Origin: Oikopleura dioica
Taxonomy: Eukaryota > Animalia > Chordata
Reading direction: 5' to 3'
Length of the DNA: 64,000 bases
Assembly (NCBI GenBank): GCA_907165135.1
Contig: OU015567.1
Span: 5,208,001 to 5,272,000, forward strand
In this document: piece by piece, positions 27,118 to 60,014 of the stretch
Position numbering within the stretch: the stretch's first letter is position 1
Layout of the letters: every line of letters starts with the position of its first letter
Notes under the pieces: generated by a model
What the model was told of the DNA's origin: nothing
Databases searched by the model: none
Seen by the model: only the letters and a program-made list of their open reading frames with translations
Made by a program: the position numbers and the translations under genes

Positions 27118-28401
27118 ATGCGTCTCATCCCCTTTTTTCTTCTTTTGAAAAGTGCATTGAACTGCAGAGAACGAATTTGCAGAAGAACTGTTTTGTCTTT
27201 ATCTGACTGTAGCCCCTGGTGGCGGGGAATCACTGCTTGTTTGGGGATAAAGGATAGTGTTCTTCTGGACACGATTCTAGCGTCCGAGTGGTACGAAAAA
27301 ACGACCGAGCTTTGTAGCGAAAAATGCGTGAAAAGAGAGAGGTCGAGGTTTTGCGCCATTTGTTGGCTAGAATCAATGAAAGAAACGGAAGAAATCGATT
27401 TGCTCCTCGAAGAAGTCGAGAAAACGCCAGAAGAAGTGGCGGACTGCTTCTTTTCCGTTTTCCCGAGAGTTGAGAAACAGGCAAGGAAATATAGCCCAAC
27501 AGACAGGAGATGTCTTATTGGCTTAACCATCGAATAAAGGTTTCTTATTGGCCTATCCTTTCTAGTGATTCATATTTGATCAAATATCCGATATATTTGA
27601 TCAAGTTAAGTTTCCTATCAAAGAAAACGATCCAAGTTCAAGAGAAATTCCTCCTCCAAACTTATGAATTTCGTCTTCCATCATCAATGGACCGATTCGC
27701 CGTTGAATTTCCCTGTCTTCCGGCAGCGTTTTCTTTCCGCAACGCCCTCTGCATTCCGAAACAGAATTTTGATCAAGCTGCTTCTGGAGTGAGTCTCGAG
27801 CGAACAAATGCCACGGATAACGTAGAACTGGATCTTGTTCTATCAAAGGAATGCTCGTTCGATCCGAAGGATGTGAATTTGGTCAGCCTTGACCAGGGAA
27901 CCTTTTGAACGGAGCTAGGTTGGAGTCGCTTCCGAACCTATTTGGAACGGTAAATATAGCAGCATCGATTGAACTTATCCTAAATTGAAGGACCTGGTCG
28001 ATTTTGTCGAGAACAGACCAAAAGTAATCAAAGTCCGAGTTTTCGTTACTTCCGATCAAAGAAGAAGAAGAAGCAGGGATAATGGCGATTACGATTACGA
28101 CTACTACGATTTCAATGAGGATGAAAACGATGCATTTTCTCCTTCTTTTGTCTTCGGAATCGGTAGTTTTTATCAAAATTACTTGATTATAAAATTTCTT
28201 TCTTCAGAAAGTAAGTGCGACATCATGATATCTTCTGCTCGAAGAATCGGGCAGCAAGAAACGAACTGGAGAGGATTGTTTCAAGAGGACCCAGTAGCAA
28301 TCAAATCTCGTCGAAGAAGACATCTTATCGGTCTTTCTGGAAGCTACAATCAGTTTTATGAACGGAATCAAAGCTTTTCCAGAAGAAACTTTTCCAATTA
28401 G
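27118..28401 (+). CDS. Hypothetical secreted Cys-rich protein with polybasic sites and DY-rich tract
   Basis: Signal peptide MRLIPFFLLLKSALNC. In-frame GT-AG introns at about 27951-27990 and 28163-28207. RRRRSR and RRRRH sites. Confidence 0.6.
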
Positions 28402-28698
28402 AGACTGATGGATTCCGAAACAGAAAAGCCTTGATTCTTCAAATTTCGAGCTTGAGCTTTCCGTAGAACTTTTGGACCGAGCTTGTCGGATCTCTTCCTC
28501 TGCTTTCTTCGTTGATCTGGACCCACCATAACAGGGCAATATCTTGTGGAAGTGGGCAACTATTCCTTCATCGGCGAACCTGGTGTAACCTGACTTTCGG
28601 GATGCGCATTGACTTTTTCGAGTGCGTGTCGTAGCGACGTCAGGAAAATCGACGAGGACATTCACTGATGATCCGCGGCTTTTTCGCGACTCGTCCAT
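28204..28698 (-). CDS. Possible small gene head-to-head with FRG1
   Basis: 164-aa ORF with AAAAATGG context and an upstream TTTTCAG acceptor. It overlaps the 3' end of the plus-strand gene. Confidence 0.35.
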   Translation of the reverse strand: MDESRKSRGSSVNVLVDFPDVATTRTRKSQCASRKSGYTRFADEGIVAHFHKILPCYGGSRSTKKAEEEIRQARSKSSTESSSSKFEESRLFCFGIHQSLIGKVSSGKALIPFIKLIVASRKTDKMSSSTRFDCYWVLLKQSSPVRFLLPDSSSRRYHDVALTF

Positions 28699-28772
28699 TT
28701 TTTGTTCTAACAGATACTCAATTTATAAGCTGAAAATCATGAAAGGAAGACTTACGGTCTGTCTTTAGAAAA

Positions 28773-31700
28773 ATGTCGGAAGTATACAATAGGGTTGGCC
28801 ATCCAAAAGTCGATGGCTGACGTGGTCGAACACTATATATTTTCTGAAAGCTCAGGAGCTGAGGATTCTAGTGGTAGCAATATTATGGGGATTGGGGATG
28901 GGAATCGGGGTTAAAATTGGGGAAAAGGATCAAAATTTTTTTGTTTATGAAAATTTGACTTCGACCCCTTATTCGAACGCTTTTGGGCCAGAGAATTCGA
29001 AAATAAATAAATTTTTGATTTTTTGAGTCGAAAAATAACGATTTCAGCCAAAAATCAAATCACTTGGCAGTTGGATTGGCCAAAAAAATCGGCCGTGGTG
29101 CGCCTGACACAAGTCACCCCTGGTCTGATACGCCTTCTTGAGAGGATTATAATAATCCGATTATTAGCCATTTATGGAAATTTTCAAAATTTTTATTAAA
29201 AACCATAATTTAAGTAAAAATCTGGACAAATTATATTTTAACAGTGAATGGGGGTGGGCGGGGTTTGGGACGCAACTGAGATTGATCAACTCGAAGCTCC
29301 CAGCCATTGTCAAGCCCCTTAATGTTAAAAATCAAGGAACGGGGCTGAGACGGCCCGAAGGGCCGTCAAGCCCCTTAATGTTAAAAATCAAGGAACGGGG
29401 CTGAGACGGCCCGAAGGGCCGTCAAGCCCCTTAATGTTAAAAATCAAGGAACGGGGCTGAGACGGCCCGAAGGGCCGTCAAGCCCCTTAATGTTAAAAAT
29501 CAAGGAACGGGGCTGAGACGGCCCGAAGGGCCGTCAAGCCCTTAATGTTAAAAATCAAGGAACGGGGCTGAGACGGCCCGAAGGGCCGTCAAGCCCCTTA
29601 ATGTTAAAAATCAAGGAACGGGGCTGAGACGGCCCGAAGGGCCGTCAAGCCCCTTAATGTTAAAAATCAAGGAACGGGGCTGAGACGGCCCGAAGGGCCG
29701 TCAAGCCCCTTAATGTTAAAAATCAAGGAACGGGGCTGAGACGGCCCGAAGGGCCGTCAAGCCCCTTAATGTTAAAATCAAGGAACGGGGCTGAGACGGC
29801 CCGAAGGGCCGTCAAGCCCTTAATGTTAAAAATCAAGGAACGGGGCTGAGACGGCCCGAAGGGCCGTCAAGCCCCTTAATGTTAAAAATCAAGGAACGGG
29901 GCTGAGACGGCCCGAAGGGCCGTCAAGCCCTTAATGTTAAAAATCAAGGAACGGGGCTGAGACGGCCCGAAGGGCCGTCAAGCCCCTTAATGTTAAAAAT
30001 CAAGGAACGGGGCTGAGACGGCCCGAAGGGCCGTCAAGCCCCTTAATGTTAAAAATCAAGGAACGGGGCTGAGACGGCCCGAAGGGCCGTCAAGCCCCTT
30101 AATGTTAAAAATCAAGGAACGGGGCTGAGACGGCCCGAAGGGCCGTCAAGCCCTTAATGTTAAAAATCAAGGAACGGGGCTGAGACGGCCCGAAGGGCCG
30201 TCAAGCCCCTTAATGTTAAAAATCAAGGAACGGGGCTGAGACGGCCCGAAGGGCCGTCAAGCCCCTTAATGTTAAAAATCAAGGAACGGGGCTGAGACGG
30301 CCCGAAGGGCCGTCAAGCCCTTAATGTTAAAAATCAAGGAACGGGGCTGAGACGGCCCGAAGGGCCGTCAAGCCCTTAATGTTAAAAATCAAGGAACGGG
30401 GCTGAGACGGCCCGAAGGGCCGTCAAGCCCCTTAATGTTAAAAATCAAGGAACGGGGCTGAGACGGCCCGAAGGGCCGTCAAGCCCCTTAATGTTAAAAA
30501 TCAAGGAACGGGGCTGAGACGGCCCGAAGGGCCGTCAAGCCCCTTAATGTTAAAAATCAAGGAACGGGGCTGAGACGGCCCGAAGGGCCGTCAAGCCCCT
30601 TAATGTTAAAAATCAAGGAACGGGGCTGAGACGGCCCGAAGGGCCGTCAAGCCCCTTAATGTTAAAAATCAAGGAACGGGGCTGAGACGGCCCGAAGGGC
30701 CGTCAAGCCCTTAATGTTAAAAATCAAGGAACGGGGCTGAGACGGCCCGAAGGGCCGTCAAGCCCTTAATGTTAAAAATCAAGGAACGGGGCTGAGACGG
30801 CCCGAAGGGCCGTCAAGCCCTTAATGTTAAAAATCAAGGAACGGGGCTGAGACGGCCCGAAGGGCCGTCAAGCCCCTTAATGTTAAAAATCAAGGAACGG
30901 GGCTGAGACGGCCCGAAGGGCCGTCAAGCCCCTTAATGTTAAAAATCAAGGAACGGGGCTGAGACGGCCCGAAGGGCCGTCAAGCCCCTTAATGTTAAAA
31001 ATCAAGGAACGGGGCTGAGACGGCCCGAAGGGCCGTCAAGCCCTTAATGTTAAAAATCAAGGAACGGGGCTGAGACGGCCCGAAGGGCCGTCAAGCCCCT
31101 TAATGTTAAAAATCAAGGAACGGGGCTGAGACGGCCCGAAGGGCCGTCAAGCCCTTAATGTTAAAAATCAAGGAACGGGGCTGAGACGGCCCGAAGGGCC
31201 GTCAAGCCCTTAATGTTAAAAATCAAGGAACGGGGCTGAGACGGCCCGAAGGGCCGTCAAGCCCCTTAATGTAAAAAATCAAGGAACGGGGCTGAGACGG
31301 CCCGAAGGGCCGTCAAGCCCCTTAATGTTAAAAATCAAGGAACGGGGCTGAGACGGCCCGAAGGGCCGTCAAGCCCCTTAATGTTAAAAATCAAGGAACG
31401 GGGCTGAGACGGCCCGAAGGGCCGTCAAGCCCCTTAATGTTAAAAATCAAGGAACGGGGCTGAGACGGCCCGAAGGAAAAAAATTGGTGAAATTCGTCTT
31501 TTTAGTGTTCTTTGAAGGGGCGGCGGGGTTAAACGAATTATTCGTTTACTATTTTGCCAAAGTCATGCTAAATAATAAGGTTTAATCTAAAAGTTTTAGA
31601 CTAAAACTTGTCGAAAACTCAGATCCTAATTATGAGCGGAAGGTGCCTTAACTGACGCAGAAAAATACGGAAATCGATGTTGACACCCTTAATATATATT

Positions 31701-34700
31701 TTTTCGATCTTGTGACTCTTTTTTACGTCATTATTAATCACTATCTTGAAAAAAAAAAATAAAGTGTTAGACGATTTCTTAATAAGTGCCATCCATTATT
31801 CGCAATTTTTCAATTTTTCGATTTTTTAACCTATCTTTGTCGGGCTGCCAAATTTTTTTCCCACCTGCTATTCAAAAGTTCAGGTACTTAAAATAAAGCT
31901 CAGACACTAGGCTATTAAATCCACATATCAAATCGACCGCGTCAGGGATCTTACTGTATAAAATTTTTCAAAATGTGAAGCTAGTGAGGTGAAATTCCAT
32001 GGGTCCAGTGAAGGTTTCCGCCCACCAATCCGAAATATGATTAATTTTTTATGTTGTATTTTTATGTTTATATTGCTTAGACGCTAAGCAACAAAAACTT
32101 ATTTAAAATGATCATCAACTATTGTCCAATCAGATTTCAGGAACGATTTTCTTCAACAAGTCAAGAATATTTCAAAAAAATTAGGTTTTCCAATAGCCAC
32201 GAGCTACCTGATTGGTCAATCCGGCTAATTCTTTCGGAGGATATGTTTTTTGACCCGAGGAATCTAAATATGACCAAATTTTTCACCCCACGTGACCTCG
32301 ACCCAAAGATGGCCAACCCTAGTATACAAAAAAGTGAAATCGGGCAAACTGAAGCTAAAAGGCGACGATACAGACGAAAAACGCCGGGCGAAGAAGAAGG
32401 CGAAAAAGGAGAAAAAAGCGCGAAAAAGAAAGCTGAACGAGGGCATCGATGAAGACGAAGAGCTCCACGCTGGATGGTACAAGGTGAGGCTTCAAATGAA
32501 GGGTTGTTTTTCAACAGCGCGGGTTTCGCTGTTTTGAGAATTATTGTTTTTGCGAGCGATCTCGGCAGTCGCGCCGAGCGAGTCTTGTCACAATTCACTG
32601 CCAATATAAAAGATTGAACGTGAAGAAATGCTTCTCATACTTGGAGATAATCTGAGATGAAGTATTTCCCTGTTTTTTGCTTGGCTGCAAAGGAAGCTTG
32701 ATAAAAAGAGAAAAAATTAGTTCTTTGACTGAAAAAGTGTGACAGGCTTTTGGCCTTTGTTAAAACCTGAGTCAGCTTCTCTTAAGCCTTTTGAAGACCC
32801 TGACTCATCTCTGTATATAGGAAATAAAGCAAAGAATGACACACTGCGACAGGTAGCTGAGTCTAGGGTCCTCTATTATTAAATTTTTATCACTCCAAAA
32901 AGGCCGCGGCAAGTTGCGCCGACGGAAATAATGGTGGCTGTTCCCACTACTGTAATGGACACACCAACGTCTGCGAATGCCCTTCCTGTTGGATTTTGAA
33001 GGATGACGGGGTCACTTGCACTCCCGATCCGGCGAAGATGGCGATCACTTGCGATCAGACTGGGATGGCGCTGGAACTCGACTTGTGCATCTACACTGGC
33101 GACCCAAGCGATTCGATCACCCTTGCTTTCGACCAGCAAAACTGCACTTCTCAACGAGACTTCGACAACGATAAGTTCTTGATTGAAACTCCACTTGATG
33201 GCTGCGCGACGACGACTTCTACTGAAGGTGACGATATTGTCTTCAAGAATACCATCAGCGTTCTTTCTCGACACAACAACTATGGAATCGACCTCAATTC
33301 CGATGTCAACATCGAAGCTCAGGAAATTTGTAAAGCATTGTAGGATTTTTCTCTCTTTTAGCCCATAAGAAGCCATTTTACTTGTTGCCAACCAAAAAGT
33401 CTGCCCCATAAAAACCGTTTTATAAATATAAAAAGTGCCGATTCTCTGCTTTCGTCTCTGAAGTCACCTCTGGAAACTACACCAATTCTCCAGCGGTGCA
33501 AGAAGTTGGCTCATCTGGAATGGGAACATTCGAATTCAACGCCGACTTTTTCACCGACGACGATTTTAGCCAGGAAGTCGACTCTACAGACGTCCAAGTC
33601 GTCGGAGAAGAAGTTTTCTTTGGAATGTCGCTGGCTACTCCCATTGACGGAATTTCCTTCACCGTTGATAGCTGCCAAGTCCAAGGGCCAAGCTACGACA
33701 CCACCGCTTCTTTCGACGTGTTCAAAGATGGCTGCGCCAATTCTGTGGTCAACAACGACGCGGTCGCCCAAGAATTCGAAGTGACCGACCAATTCAAGCT
33801 CTCTTACCACGCTTTCCAATTCTCTGGAAACGAAAATCGCGAAACAACGGAGATGAAGATGGTCTGCCACGTCCACATCTGTCGCAACGGCATCTGTCCC
33901 ATCAGCGAGCCTAACTGCTGATTTCTTTAACCCTTTCTGTGAACTTGTCATTTTCTGCTTTTTCAAATAAATCAACGCCAGACTAAAATTTTCTATTCAA
34001 GCTTTTTCTTCAAAAGTTATTTTGACGAGGCTTATTTGCGATTTATTCCAAAATACACCTTTCTTCTATTTTTTCGTATTACGGGGTTTTATTTGGTATC
34101 TTGGTTTAACCTGCAAGAACAGGTTAAAATGATGACGAAATAGTTTTTTCTTGTCCCTTCGGTCTATTTGATGCTTTTTCTAAAATATTTTGCGTTCAAA
34201 TAACAAGCTGTTTCAGTACAGCGATGTGGAAATGATGAAACCAGGGCTGACGGCGCTTGAATTCGGCGATCGAACATATGTTTTCTCGTTGGACACGGGC
34301 TTGTTTACGCTTGGCGCGCCCAGAAAGGACGAGGGAGGCGCCCCAGCACCCGAAGGAAATGGTTTTACACACTGTTTTACATTGTTTCATTCATTTTAGA
34401 CGGCTCCCTGGAAGTGTGAGTCAAAATAAAGTGCTTATTTCGATTACAGTAGTCAAAAACGGGGCTTATTTTCTACTCTAGTCAAGAAAAAGAAAGGCTC
34501 AGATACTTGCGCAGAAACCTGAGTCAGGGTCCTGTTAAAGCTTGACTGTTTTAACACAGGTTTTTACGCAGGTTTTCGAGTTGCGGAGCCTATCCTAGAA
34601 AACCATTTGGAAAGAACAGTACTTTCTATCGAAAATATCAAACACGAAGATCGCCTTGAAATCTGGCTACGGAAAGTATCTCGGCGTGGACAAGCAAGGC

Positions 34701-36158
34701 CTCGTCATCGGCAGATCGGATGCAATTACCCCGCTGGAGCAATTTGAACCAGGTACGACCGAAATTGAACTGAGAGAAAACTGGATTACTGGTCACTCTT
34801 CGATCGGATTAATTAAAATGTGGCGTCATCGACTCATCGCTGAATTCTAGTTTGGCAAAAAGTCGATGGAAAAGAAAAATGCGCCCTGATCGCCTCGAAT
34901 GGCTGCTTTATTGAGTTCAACGAAGAGGGCGATCTAGTTGCGACGAAGCGAAATGCAGAAGAGGTAATTAAGGCGCGCTCCCTGGATTCTTTCTCATATA
35001 AACAAGGCCACAGATTGGAGATGGAGGAATTTGTGAAATTTTTGTTTGCCCATTATCTCCAAGTTTCTCATTTAGAAGAGAGGCGTTATTCTCTTGAAAA
35101 CAAAGAATTTGAGCGTATCTTTGGTAGTATCTGGGGTCGGCAACCCATCTTTTAAACAAAAGATGGGAAAGGGAAAGATGGGTTTTCCGAAAGATGGGAA
35201 AGATGGGTTTCAAAGATGGGAAAGTTGGGTTTCCTTAAAGATGGGAAAGGTGGGTTCCAAAGATGGGTTAGCAGCAAAAAGCAGCCAAAGAAAGCTTCCC
35301 GAGCTGATACTTCAAGTTCCAGTATTTCGAAAACATAAAATCAGGAAATTAAGCTGGGAGTACATTTTTCTTTCATAGGCGAAAGCCATCTTTCCCATCT
35401 TTCGAACCCATCTTTCCCATCTTTGACACCCATCTTTTGAAAACCCATCTTTCCCATCATTCAGACCAAAAGATGGGTGAGGGAAAAAAGACAAAAACCC
35501 ATCTTTCCCACCTTTCCCCTAACCAATCTTTCCCATCATTCCCATCTTTGAAAGATGGGTCGCCGACCTCAGGGTAGTACCTGACTCAGGTTTTAGGCTG
35601 GTTGCCGAGTAATGGACTAGAAAATAAGGGTGTCAGCAAGCGTAGTCATTGACATAAACCCTCTTTCAACTAATAATCGGGTAACGAATGTAGAACCTCT
35701 TAGCATTGGCACTAGAATCACTATATAATTACTATATAATTCTCGTAATTCCTGATTAGCTTACAAAATTACAAAAATGACAAGAGAAAGCCATGTTCCC
35801 AAAACATGTTTCGCCACGAGCCTCCACGAAAATCCATTCTCCCCAATTCGTAATTATCAAATTTTGCAATCAAACAGCATCTATTCTAACATCCCTTTCT
35901 TTTTGCTAGGGAAACTACCTGAGCATCCGCACGAACATTCCCAAGCCCGAAGTAAACGTCGTTCCTTTCGAAGAACAAGGCGACGCGGCCGATGTCGAGC
36001 TCAAAATCGCCAAGAAGTATCAACACTGGCAAGATATGAAAATGAAGATCAACAAGAACGACATCAAAGAGGTCGAAATCGCGAAGAAAAAAGGACGGCT
36101 CCACGCTTGTCTGCTAGACAGACGCGCCGCCATGAAATCTGATAAATACTGCAAATAA
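28773..36158 (+). CDS. FRG1: FRG1 (FSHD region gene 1 homolog), first exon interrupted by a transposon
   Basis: Pre-insertion start [17 protein letters not shown]; GLFTLGAP; [12 protein letters not shown]...GRSDAI; C-terminal [15 protein letters not shown]. Confidence 0.95.
28790..32321. mobile_element. Non-autonomous hAT-type DNA transposon (3,532 bp) carrying a tandem array
   Basis: Perfect 14-bp TIR TAGGGTTGGCCATC and perfect 8-bp TSD GTATACAA (28782-28789 and 32322-32329). No transposase ORF. Confidence 0.9.
29309..31476. repeat. 56-bp tandem repeat, ~39 near-identical copies, each with a GC-rich hairpin
   Basis: Unit GTCAAGCCCCTTAATGTTAAAAATCAAGGAACGGGGCTGAGACGGCCCGAAGGGCC. Variants are almost only homopolymer length changes. 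Confidence 0.99.
32657..33921 (+). CDS. Secreted EGF + ZP-domain protein nested in FRG1 intron 1
   Basis: EGF ([13 protein letters not shown]...[16 protein letters not shown]), ZP-N (ITCDQTGM...LDGCATT) and ZP-C (FTVDSCQV...FSYHAFQF...VCHVHIC). Start codon tentative. Confidence 0.88.
35131..35572. mobile_element. MITE with 8-bp TSD and internal AAAGATGGG repeats, in an FRG1 intron
   Basis: TIR CTG(G/A)GGTCGGC(A/G)ACCCATCTTT. Flanks are GGTAGTAT and GGTAGTAC. Confidence 0.8.
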
Positions 36159-36667
36159 CTGCCAATACAAGCATAATTACTGTCGATTACTGTCAGTTCA
36201 AAAATAGCATTTAAAATGAATATTTTGCATTTCGAAATAAGGGTGTCACCTTAGTAAGGAAGGACAATTTTCCATAAAAAGCCGCCCTCATCTCTTACAA
36301 GCTCAAAGCCGCTAGCGGCTTCTCCAGTTTAATCAATTTTTTTGGAATAAGGGAGTCAACATGTTAGCTTTGAAAGAAAATTCATCATTTTAGCATAGAA
36401 AGTTCACCAAAGAAAGATTCAATAAGCTCAAAAAAGTGCTGTTAATTGCTCGGTTGAGCGCAACAAAGTGGTGAAATGGCGCGTTCTGCGAAGCCCCGTC
36501 GCCGTGAAAATGAAACAAAGAACCTGTGGGTCGGGCTAAGCTGTTGAATTTGCATTTTGAATTACGCTCAACTCAGCGTTCTCTATACTTAGACAGCCCC
36601 CGCTCTGAGTCGGTCGATTCAAGAGCGTTCAAGTTTTGTTTTTGTTTGAATTCAAAGTTGATCCTCA

Positions 36668-42522: not shown

Positions 42523-45300
42523 TCACAGAACAGGCTCTGGAATCATTCTTTTCCGATTTACCTTGCATTGGCAGCCAATATCGACGTGCCCCCCACTTGT
42601 GTCGCATTTCTTCCCGTCCCCATCGATGCAGTACAAGCTAAAATTTTCACCTTCTAAATGGCCTACCTCGCATTTGTCCACTCTCTTGTGGCACATTTGC
42701 GCCGCGCCGAGATGCTTGAGCCGCTCGTCGTCCAGACCAAAGGAATTTTCCAACACCCATCTTCTACTCAGCCCGCAGCAGGCTTTGTGAATAACGCCGC
42801 GACAAACGACCGAAGTGTTTTGAAGATTTTTTCGTCGCTCGAACTTTTTTAAAAGGCTCAAAAAAGGGTCTTAACTTAAGGGCGTACACATCGATATTCC
42901 GAAAATTATTTTTTAACGAATAAATAGGGATTAAAGGCTCGAAAACCTGCGTAAAAACCTGTGTCAGGGTTCTGAAAAATCTAAAAAGAAAAGCCGCGTA
43001 GCGGCTTTTTTTAAAAACGAAGCCGCAAAGCGGCTTCGCCAGAATAACCTTATCAATCTTAATCTTGAAGAAAAAAACCTGACTCAGATCTTCTACACAG
43101 GTGGTAGATATCAAGAATCAGATTTCTTGTCAGGGTTTTCCCAGATTTTCAACATAGTGACCCCCTTATTTTCTCTGCTAAAAATTAACTTCAGGCAGTT
43201 ATCTATTTCCTATGGAAGCCAAAAATTTAGATTTCTTGATATTTCGAGTTGCTAAAATGCAAATCTGGCACCTCCGATTCTTGCCAAAATGATCATTTTT
43301 GGAAAGTAAGCGATCTTTGACGAAAAATTTTGCTAAAATTTTTTTTGAAATTCGAAATTTCGGCCTCCATAGGAAATAGAGTAAGGTCTAAAGTTTTTGT
43401 TTCGAAAGTAAAATAAGGGTGTTACTATTTAAACTTTGGCAGAAAAGTCTGACAGAACATGGCGATTCTTGATATCTACCTCCTAAAAGAGCCTACTTTT
43501 TGAGCTAGGCATTAGGATAATGACCGAAGAAAGATGTGGTGAGTCAATATTGACATGAAGATAGCGATGTTTTTCAAAAAACATAAAGTGACAAAAAGTG
43601 AGCTCATTCTTTCCTGGAACAGATAAGCTAGCCCCGAATACAAGTATCCCAAAATCCTGTCACACTGTGCTACGCCCTTAGATAAGTCTTTCGGCAAGTC
43701 TAGATATTACGCTTGAGACACCCTTAATTCAAGAATCGTGGGAAAGAAGCGTCATTTCTGGTCAAAATTCAAAAAAAAGATGAAATTAATTATTGACGAT
43801 CTTCGTAAAAATAAGGATGGAGCTGTCTAAATCACGGAATTAGCATAAAATCTGATGTACTGGTGAGCCATGCCTGGTCCTCATCGAGACACGTGTATGT
43901 TAGTCGACATCTTGGACCTTCGCAATCTTGGAACTCGTAGCGGACCTGAATTTTTGATGATGATTTTTCAAATTCGAAGCAGTTTTTTAATGAAAAATTT
44001 GAAAAATATTTTTTTAATTTCAATCTTATTTTCGAGAAAAAAGATCGAAGTCTATTTAAATTTCTTGCTGGGAGTTTTCGACCAATTAGAGGCCAGTATA
44101 GTTTTTGAACTAAAAATTTTATTGGCTCTTGGAAACAATACGAGCCTCTGATTGGTCGAAAACCCCCGTAAATTCTCGATTTTAAAGCATGTTTTCTTTT
44201 TTTAAAAATAGGCTGACAGTACTTGATAAGGATCAAGAAATTTCTGTTTATGTTATTAACCATCTTGAAAAAGCATATTGTCGTAACAGTTAGAAAAATA
44301 ACTGTTTCTGTCAAAATAAACTTGTTTTGCGAACTTCAACTGAGATCCCAATTTGTAATTTCTTAATTTGGTAAACAGTTATTATCGTTATTTGCATAAT
44401 ACTGTCCGAGCAAAGACGGAAAACGGAGATCTAAGAAGTTTTCCTTTGTAACAGTATTTACGAAAAACAAGCAGCGGTCGTTTCGAAAATAAGAACCGAA
44501 ACTTGTTGAATTTGGTAACTAACCTTTCCGTCATCAGAATTGACAGGCGTTGTTCCGCAGTTTTCGAAGCCAAGGTAGCCGGCTAGATGATCGATTCCCC
44601 CGCTGCCAAGTACTGTTACTGTCAGTGTTGGAAGAGCTACAATTTTCGGTTAAAACTGATAACATCTGTTCTAGTGAAAGCTCATCAATTCATTCTTCAT
44701 GATTTTTCTTCAATTCTAACAAAGTGACACCCTTATTTTTTCCATCTCAATGGGCCGTAGTTTTATCTTGAAAAATAGGGGTGTTACTGTGTTAAATAAT
44801 CAAAAAATATCTGAAGAAACATTCAATCAATTTCAACTTATCTCAACACACTATTTTTCGATAACTTAACAGAGTAACACCCTTATTTGTTTAGTAAAAC
44901 TAAGGCGCCTTAAGGGTGTCAACATTGATTTCGACAGTTCTTTGGGAAAGATGAAACTAATTATTCATTTCATCAGGCAGACCCTTAACCTATCGATGTT
45001 GAGACCCTTATGGTAAAAGAAAATAAGGGTGTCACTTTGTTGAATTCTCATGTTTAGACAAGGTTAAAGCCGGAGATTTCTTACTTTAATCAATAGACAA
45101 TTAAGTTCACATTTAATTATGAATCATAATTTATGATTCAATTAACCCATAAAAACTAGACTTTTCATTAACGTGGTCTCTCTGAAAGACCATTTATCCC
45201 TATTATGATTGTCCACTTACCGACTAATCCGCGCATTTGGTCACCCACGTGAGTCCACTTGAAGAAAGATGATGCAGCAGATGATGATTTTCGTCGTTTC
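42523..45300 (-). CDS. Hypothetical multi-exon cysteine-rich protein (5' end not found)
   Basis: Phase-compatible exons at about 45300-45222, 44635-44522, 43950-43860, 43698-43611 and 42836-42523. Confidence 0.55.
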
Positions 45301-58780: not shown

Positions 58781-60014
58781 ATGATCCTCGTGGAAACCCT
58801 CTCTGTCCTGTGTAATTTGCTATCATTAGGTAAAAAGGCTCTTTGTGTCTTTCGATCTTGAACCCTTTCTTCTTCTTGGTTTATTTATTATTCCGTCTGT
58901 AGGACTGATCATCGTGGCGACGATTACGCCGTATTGGAAGATCGACAAGTCCGACGATTTGTTCAAAAACATCTTTCCGGATTACAACCAGGGCCTCTGG
59001 GTTAGGTGCAATCAAGAGATAAAGAGCGCAAAGTGGATTTGCTCGGGATTAGAAGATGTGTACAAAGAAATTCCTCTCGAGATAAAGGTACAGATTTACA
59101 TTAGCCGCAATTTTGGTCAGTAATCGCGCTTTATACCCCTGTCTTGGCTCAATACGAATTCAGACAATCGGTTCAATATTCAATTTTCATCCATTTCTTG
59201 GTTCTTTTCAAGGGTTTTTTCGACCAATAAGAAGCCAGTATTCAATATTGGCAATACTGTAGTTCGAAAAAATGATTTGATCTTAACTTTAAACTGCTTA
59301 TCATAGTTTAAGGGTGTCCACATCGAAAAATAGCGAATTCGATGTTGACACCCTTAAGCCTTGCCGATTTTTCTGCAAAAAGTCGGCTCTAGAATTTCAA
59401 ATTTGAAATTTTGTCTTTCAGATTTCACGATTATTTATCATCGTCTCCATTTTATCCCACTCTTTGGCATTTCTGAGCGGAGTTTTTGGACTGAGATGCA
59501 TCTCGATCGGTGGACATCGACCAGATTTTAAATACAGACTCGTAAGTTCTTTCTTATCAGCTTGAGAATTATGATCGTCATTAATTCATCTTTTTATCGG
59601 AGAAAGAAAGGGAAAACCGCTTTTCAGAACATTCTATCGATTCTGTTCCACATGATCGATTTGCTGTCAGTACTGGCCTGTACATTATCATTCACAATTC
59701 CGCTTCTTCGGGACTACTACAAGCCCTCTCAAAAGGTAACAAACGTCATTCATTTTCGTCTCGAAATTCTTTCAGCTTTCTCCCGTCTCAATTTTGAAGG
59801 GATCTTCTGTTTCAGTTCCCAGCTGGTGTATATATTTTCTAGTAGCATCTTTCTTCATTATATTTATAAATATCGGTGAGACCCCCTTAAACACTTTCCT
59901 CTTCATCGCTTTTTAGTCCTTACGTGCCTCATAACAGCCGAGTCCGCAAAGCCGAATTCGCGCTTTTTCCAGGAATGCGGGTACAATTTAACAATCAAGG
60001 TGCGCTCATTTTAA
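58781..60014 (+). CDS. Claudin/PMP22-family tetraspan protein
   Basis: TPYW...QGLWVRC...WIC signature and four TM segments. The 3' end is uncertain. Confidence 0.8.

Follow-up and report, generated by a model that had tools for sequence, protein, structure and literature searches.

The 64,000-nucleotide stretch of Oikopleura dioica contig OU015567.1 studied here (positions 5,208,001 to 5,272,000 of the forward strand in assembly GCA_907165135.1; hereafter the window, with all coordinates counted from its first letter) carries a 3,532-bp hAT-like transposable element at 28790-32321, which splits codon 6 of the gene FRG1, 17 nt past its ATG (28773). The reading that we favor, with a probability of roughly 55%, is that this filled allele yields no functional FRG1, being either a null or a strong hypomorph, and that it is tolerated in the sequenced animals. 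A non-autonomous element with TAGGG...CCCTA ends inserted just downstream of the FRG1 AUG in a single lineage belonging to the O. dioica complex and generated an 8-bp target site duplication (TSD). In the sequence of events that we propose, the FRG1 pre-mRNA would normally be trans-spliced to the spliced leader (SL) 3-4 nt before the AUG, and an SL-spliced messenger from the filled allele would therefore keep the element within exon 1 and end translation after 15 codons.

The junctions of the element read ATGTCGGAAGTATACAA/TAGGGTTGGCCATC...GATGGCCAACCCTA/GTATACAAAAAAGTG. At each end lies a 14-bp terminal inverted repeat (TIR), namely TAGGGTTGGCCATC on the plus strand at 28790-28803 and its inverted partner on the minus strand at 32308-32321, which reads GATGGCCAACCCTA on the plus strand and holds an out-of-frame ATG at 32309. 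The two repeats agree at 14 of 14 positions and are the only two occurrences of this sequence in the 64-kb window, for which the chance expectation of matches with up to two mismatches is 0.19. Abutting both TIRs are the two copies of the TSD, GTATACAA, at 28782-28789 and, on the plus strand, at 32322-32329, and these 8 bp also occur nowhere else in the window. Beyond the TIRs, the two ends of the element continue to resemble each other imperfectly out to about 40 nt (GTCGA..ACGTGG), and, when paired, they reach -53.8 kcal/mol, compared to -25.8±3.6 for shuffled sequences. Such an end-to-end stem, which could juxtapose or bury splice sites, is expected for any element with TIRs.

The interrupted gene can be identified as the FRG1 orthologue, and the host as a lineage of the O. 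dioica species complex, from the similarity of the encoded protein to known sequences. The window exons match Pfam family PF06229 (8.6e-18 in exon 5, 7.5e-15 in exon 3, and weakly in exon 2), and the conceptual product obtained once the element and a single TSD copy are omitted is 269 amino acids long, has no other lesion, and shows 90% gapless identity to O. dioica FRG1 (CBY10465/E4XJ22) and 49% identity to an amphioxus FRG1-like protein. These results bear out an earlier note on this DNA, made from its letters alone, which placed the insertion in codon 6 of FRG1 and proposed that removal of 28790-32321 along with one TSD copy restores the open reading frame (ORF); the restored frame is in fact colinear with orthologues that read MSEEYKKVKSG. 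As the same note had stated, translation of the filled allele stops early, in that the ORF encodes 15 amino acids and is then closed by a premature TGA at codon 16 (28818-28820, plus strand), within the element. In comparison with a complementary DNA (cDNA) of the type found in Bergen, the dN/dS ratio of the gene is 0.048, with a dS of about 1.3, which points to strong purifying selection on FRG1 between lineages.

The insertion lies in true coding sequence, because in cDNAs of a sister lineage, which start with the SL, only 3 nt separate this leader from the homologous ATG. The metatranscriptome contigs L007 and L008, both of the Bergen type, open with the final 23 nt (L007) and 29 nt (L008) of the 40-nt O. 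dioica SL, whose sequence has been published (PMC6883708). In this region (1-26 in L007 and 1-32 in L008), the SL is joined at an AG that precedes the homologous ATG by 3 nt, after which the two contigs read uninterrupted across the insertion site as MSEEYKKVKSG... The corresponding candidate trans-splice acceptor in the window is the AG at 28767-28768 (plus strand), 4 nt before the ATG (tctttAG/AAAA ATG), and the arrangement of a pyrimidine tract, an AG, three or four A residues and the ATG is conserved in metagenome contigs from related lineages (L001-L004). We infer that the lineage of the window uses this acceptor, and FRG1 would accordingly appear to be an SL-trans-spliced gene with almost no 5' untranslated region. 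A different first exon for FRG1, which the earlier note had named as a finding that would undo its interpretation, was not seen in the relatives, whose cDNAs start with the SL just before the homologous ATG.

Splice options for the filled allele were derived by frame arithmetic on the window sequence. Upstream of the premature stop there are three GT donors, at 28782, 28794 and 28809, each of which leaves a multiple of three coding bases. The AG at 32321-32322, which is made of the final TA of the right TIR and of the first G of the downstream TSD copy (completing an acceptor-like CCCTAG), requires 3n+1 bases, and the AG at 32307-32308 requires 3n+2. Because donor and acceptor phases do not match, all canonical combinations with AG 32322 or 32308 are out of frame, including the splice from GT 28782 to AG 32322, which loses one base too many, as had been proposed. 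The canonical exception that is in frame uses a poor in-exon acceptor, AG 32353-32354, and would delete the conserved motif. With acceptors at the end of the element, only the non-canonical donors GG, GC or GA are in frame, so that the previous assertion that in-frame rescue needs either a non-canonical donor or an acceptor within the exon was arithmetically right. Since canonical GT-AG removals of the element are thus all out of frame, a null or strong hypomorph is the likeliest status of this allele.

Five marine metagenome contigs of related lineages (L001-L005) carry an uninterrupted site, which makes the insertion a derived feature of the lineage represented in the window. In L001 and L005, the two sequences that flank the element in the window (89% and 92-95% identity) abut directly, with a single copy of the 8-mer. 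Codon 4 is GTA (valine) in both TSD copies (28782-28784 and 32322-32324), and is GAA or GAG (glutamate) in the relatives, a comparison that included the five contigs and all cDNA-derived proteins. Because both TSD copies carry GTA, the substitution of glutamate with valine must predate the insertion. Due to the identity of the two TIRs and of the two TSD copies, the otherwise intact gene, and the empty site in related lineages, the insertion can be regarded as very young, in agreement with its earlier description as very recent. When the JGI metagenome contigs were searched with an exact 32-nt pattern that combines the uninterrupted site and the GTA codon specific to this lineage, nothing was returned, and protein-level searches retrieved empty sites solely from relatives with GAA or GAG. 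The ORF of the filled allele is not on record in public assemblies, and no FRG1 protein of the window lineage between 45 and 470 amino acids was present in a collection of 5.8 billion proteins that contains many from sister lineages, a weak negative given that the collection may lack this lineage.

Sequencing reads were compared with positions 31480-36500, which take in the element's right arm and right junction as well as all of the gene downstream, by using contigs of 31-mer graphs from two DNA samples of one study, X25 and X26, which contain 95% and 83% of the sampled words, respectively. The junction contigs of both samples open at 32292, which is the start of the first 31-mer to reach flanking base 32322, and extend into the gene without mismatch and unbroken at 32321 (for 2,892 nt in X25 and 281 nt in X26). 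A contig start at 32292 is as expected if the terminal 30 or more nucleotides of the element are common to other copies. X26 represents a distinct genotype: it has single-nucleotide polymorphisms (SNPs) at 35049-35102, part of its intron 4 is exchanged for other sequence, and minor haplotypes occur within intron 1. Because it nonetheless shows the same junction, we conclude that the right junction is real and not private to one set of haplotypes. The read check that had been called for was hence passed at the right junction, the one compared here, which was reproduced in short-read contigs of two samples. As only the filled junction is seen in both samples, the filled allele is apparently common in the sequenced animals.

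RNA did not bear on the junction. In two oligo-dT runs carrying the same species label (X4 and X5), no read reached at least 99% identity to the window, and reads aligned from 32394 onward only, which makes them uninformative on the junction even as they show the joint of exon 1 and exon 2. Both runs come from a divergent lineage, 5-10% away from the window even within exons, and none of the RNA runs listed contained this segment. The 31-mers of the window are likewise almost absent from most DNA runs filed under the species label. The label spans deeply divergent cryptic lineages, and public RNA can therefore not be assumed to match the assembly.

The assignment of the element to the hAT type, already suggested in the earlier note, is supported by an 8-bp TSD, TIRs that start with TAGGG, and a fit to the nTnnnnAn target pattern. 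Ends of hAT elements typically start with YARNG, and the TIRs found here begin with TAGGG, which is consistent with that motif and gives the terminal pattern TAGGG...CCCTA. The TSD, GTATACAA, has a T at position 2 and an A at position 7, and so fits the 5'-nTnnnnAn-3' preference described for Hermes (PMC10368747), which is weak evidence, as it comes from one site. The lineage-specific GTA substitution is what supplies the T at position 2 of the target. The element has no ORF longer than 114 amino acids, no Pfam match, and no transposase, and lacking coding capacity it must be non-autonomous. Neither the element nor the window holds a hAT transposase (BED, RNase-H-like DDE, or hAT dimerisation domains), and no autonomous partner with matching ends, which would carry TAGGGTTGGCC, was found in the window or among the metagenome contigs. 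A window-wide scan for a second TAGGG...CCCTA element with a TSD gave none, and the five matches to the TIR plus subterminal pattern among metagenome contigs were all attributable to chance, since similarity extends no further. Evidence of other copies came instead from the reads. Summed contig depth over 32152-32319, the last ~170 bp of the element, is about 2.4 times that of the flank in the two samples, and contigs of both X25 and X26 stop at 32267 and resume at 32292, at the last ~54 bp. These contig breaks, along with the excess of terminal depth, indicate that the termini of the element are multi-copy and its interior low-copy. Multi-copy termini and a site that is empty in L001-L005 are both what a mobile element should display, and on its sequence features we regard this one as a non-autonomous, cut-and-paste member of the hAT superfamily.

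The interior of the element is made up of a 519-bp left arm, a minisatellite of 2.2 kb (29309-31476), and an 845-bp right arm (31477-32321), of which the last ~54 bp are the part in common with other genomic copies. The minisatellite consists of 38.9 copies of a 56-bp unit with 99% matches and a GC content of 55%, and the fold of every unit comprises a pair of hairpins (z = -2.7 to -3.9 in comparison to shuffled sequences). An Rfam scan of 28000-33000 returned a sub-threshold match to 'sok' inside the satellite, which we rejected as a chance match. Like MITEs (transposable elements that are miniature and have inverted repeats) of the hAT superfamily and other non-autonomous hAT elements (Ac/Ds, hobo, Hermes), the FRG1 element combines an 8-bp TSD, short TAGGG TIRs, lack of coding capacity, and imperfect subterminal similarity. 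It differs from them in its size of 3.5 kb, to which the hairpin-forming satellite, an unusual cargo, contributes most, and in its interior, which appears to be low-copy, with only the last ~50 bp shared with copies.

Two features of the right arm deserve mention. At 31660, 31698 and 32092, all in homopolymer runs, the contigs of both DNA samples have one additional A, two additional T residues, and one additional A, respectively, compared to the window. These differences are likely residual indel errors of long reads; otherwise, the contig would derive from a near-identical second copy. Furthermore, many contigs of both samples share the segments 31660-31703 and 34515-34533 and then diverge into unrelated sequence, so that these segments look like a small high-copy repeat, present both in the right arm of the element and in intron 2 of FRG1. 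BLAST comparison of both arms with the remainder of the window and with the relatives' loci yielded only two matches, of 23-33 nt, both to this small internal repeat, as 31660-31692 pairs with 59325-59357 and with 44910-44932.

As a null allele, the FRG1 insertion resembles classical transposon-induced nulls, such as those due to Ds in maize or to hobo and P in Drosophila, in that a young cut-and-paste element with intact ends truncates the coding sequence near its 5' end. Oikopleura differs from those hosts in having SL trans-splicing and a permissive choice of 5' splice sites, which open unusual rescue routes. Three considerations weigh against our preferred interpretation. A null is somewhat unexpected as the only allele seen in two samples, because FRG1 is strongly conserved, as its dN/dS shows. 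In-frame removal of the element as a GG-AG intron is possible, given that the host widely tolerates donors other than GT and that FRG1 itself has a GA-AG intron. Lastly, the contigs are weak evidence of absence, and an empty allele may exist in X25 and X26.

The alternative that survives best, which we nevertheless hold to be rather doubtful, is that the element behaves as a nascent intron, removed by a permissive U2 spliceosome that would join a G-N donor, located within the left TIR or close to it, with an AG at the opposite, right end. In its simplest version, the candidate GG donor at 28792-28793 (plus strand; ...TACAATA/GGGTTGG), identified by frame arithmetic, would be used with the AG at 32321-32322, and FRG1 would remain functional with a 9-nt scar in its variable extreme N-terminus. 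The predicted product, MSEVYNIYKKVKSG, is in frame (MSEVY-NIY-KKVKSG) and retains the conserved motif, and the predicted junction, ...GTATACAATA/TATACAAAAAAG..., would be 9 nt longer than a cDNA from the empty allele. A further predicted combination, of GG 28793 with AG 32308, adds 24 nt and is also in frame. Introns other than GT/AG account for 11% of the total in the Okinawa type and 12% in the Bergen type of O. dioica (PMC8008620), and GA-AG introns, set in an AG/GAA context, are unusually common in this species (PMC7072748). That about 11% of introns are non-GT/AG, and that intron 2 of FRG1 is itself a conserved GA-AG intron supported by cDNA, make a non-canonical route more credible. It is also favored by the filled allele being seemingly the sole allele in two samples in spite of strong conservation of the gene, and by the pairing of the element ends, which would bring the splice sites together. 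However, of the 9 positions in the U1 consensus, only 3 are matched by the context of the GG (ATA/GGGTTG), which is also without the AG/GAA context of O. dioica GA-AG introns (PMC7072748). Moreover, at 3.5 kb the element is about 70 times longer than a typical intron of O. dioica, the median being 49 bp (PMC8008620), and it abounds in GC-rich hairpins. The GT at 28794 (AGG/GTTGGC), which is out of frame, is a stronger donor and would compete, and the stem, common to all TIR elements, could equally hide the splice sites.

A broader and bolder version of this idea, which we consider unlikely, is that the TAGGG hAT family is an active animal system akin to introners, in which the TIR would provide the GG donor, its terminal TA would form the acceptor together with the G of the TSD, the ends would pair, and removal would leave a 9-nt scar; the FRG1 copy would then be a newborn 3.5-kb non-canonical intron. 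According to two papers (PMC11282704, PMC13326754) that summarise Henriet et al. (2019), the larvacean Fritillaria borealis has non-canonical introns that arose from MITEs. The FRG1 insertion is like those introns, and like introners, in that a DNA transposon with TIRs sits in a coding exon of a larvacean, a host that accepts donors other than GT, and in that a GG-AG removal is possible on paper. Introners, in contrast, carry or create splice sites for exact or in-frame removal, and their splicing has been seen in RNA. At the element-end acceptors of the FRG1 insertion, no ends that would supply an exact or in-frame canonical removal were found, and its best in-frame donor is weak.

To return to the null allele, a question that concerns its zygosity alone, and is compatible with loss of FRG1 function, is whether an intact second allele exists, the insertion being heterozygous and the merging of haplotypes having kept the longer, filled one. 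The Okinawa assembly derives from a single male whose heterozygosity was about 3.6%, and it merges the haplotypes (PMC8008620), which is relevant only if that assembly is the source of the window, and in X25 the contig of the element interior has 0.58 times the depth of the flank. We nonetheless judge a second, intact allele to be quite unlikely. An empty allele would give the 31-mer at 32321 a second predecessor and so break the contig, yet the junction contigs of both samples run from 32292 through 32321 without such a branch, and the description of the insertion as probably heterozygous in the earlier note is therefore not upheld. In X26, furthermore, interior and flank depth are equal (1.0x). 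Depth was in any case rejected as a measure of zygosity, as the values are whole-contig means and the probable source library was amplified. The published Okinawa Illumina library was in fact made from amplified DNA, and if X25 is likewise whole-genome amplified, its depth is unreliable (PMC8008620).

Alternatively, the filled allele might produce a truncated FRG1 without its lysine-rich N-terminus, if the SL were spliced to the CCCTAG at the right end, or if transcription started inside the element, and translation then began from M64 or M65 in exon 2. FRG1 appears to be SL-trans-spliced, the G of the TSD makes a TAG acceptor exactly at the end of the element, and an in-frame ATG ATG is found at the start of exon 2. 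Against these points, two out-of-frame AUGs precede M64 in the remainder of exon 1, the TAG is preceded by a weak pyrimidine tract, and the truncation would remove a basic region resembling a nuclear localization signal as well as the conserved GWY strand. No protein of about 206 amino acids from the window lineage is on record in the protein collection, and overall we deem this outcome improbable. That the element was misplaced in FRG1 during assembly is hardly credible because, even though read support covers only the right junction and the right arm shows the three homopolymer-length indels, perfect TIRs and a perfect TSD mark the precise point where an ORF that is colinear elsewhere is interrupted, and independent short-read contigs from two samples reproduce the right junction.

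The exon model of FRG1, all on the plus strand, was guided by full-length proteins of relatives. Exon 1 starts with 17 coding bases (28773-28789; ATG TCG GAA GTA TAC AA) that end in the first TSD copy, and its remainder (32330-32483, ...GWYK) leads to the donor AAG/GTGAGG, so that 32483, which had been given as the end coordinate, is the true end of exon 1. It is followed by intron 1 (GT-AG, 32484-34216, 1,733 nt); exon 2 (34217-34355), whose joint with exon 1 is seen in sister-lineage RNA; intron 2 (34356-34614), with the non-canonical borders GA-AG (GAAG/GAAATGG...GGAAAG/AAC); exon 3 (34615-34752); intron 3 (GT-AG, 34753-34850); exon 4 (34851-34963), which ends AEE/GTAATT according to the relatives' full-length proteins; intron 4 (GT-AG, 34964-35909); and exon 5, including the stop codon (35910-36155). 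The GA-AG intron 2 is kept in the Bergen genomic contig L006 (7777-7928) and removed in the cDNA contigs L007 and L008, and its AG/GAA context agrees with the consensus for GA-AG introns in O. dioica (PMC7072748). A GT at 34362, 6 nt downstream of the intron 2 donor, is also in frame and would add Gly-Asn.

Some observations concern the introns and the surroundings of the gene. Within intron 1, two ORFs on the FRG1 strand (32867-33918) code for a ZP-C domain (PF00100, 2.6e-12) and an EGF-like module. The Bergen-type intron 1 (L006, 6253-7062), where no gene is annotated, retains portions of this sequence with 75-86% conservation. In X26, 35 other letters take the place of a repeat-rich stretch of 485 bp in intron 4 (35133-35619, with tandem repeats at 35171-35549), and a cluster of six SNPs lies immediately upstream of it; this indel polymorphism is probably another mobile or satellite insertion. 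Upstream of FRG1, an ORF of 164 amino acids without a Pfam match (28204-28698, minus strand) starts 75 nt from the FRG1 ATG in head-to-head orientation, and its start region is 89% conserved in L001 and L005. The upstream neighbor in the Bergen type is a TM231-like gene on the same strand, and gene order thus differs between lineages.

Taken alone, this element is one more young gene-breaking transposon insertion, and as such ordinary; young transposon insertion alleles are a known class, of which the FRG1 copy is a new case. Exonic insertions affect the gene models and completeness scores of this assembly. In larvaceans, they acquire further interest, as these are the animals in which non-canonical introns are believed to have arisen from inserted transposons. 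Because it has no canonical in-frame exit, sits in a conserved gene, and is seemingly the sole allele in two samples, the FRG1 copy provides a sharp test case between a tolerated knockout of FRG1 and the birth of a GG-AG intron.

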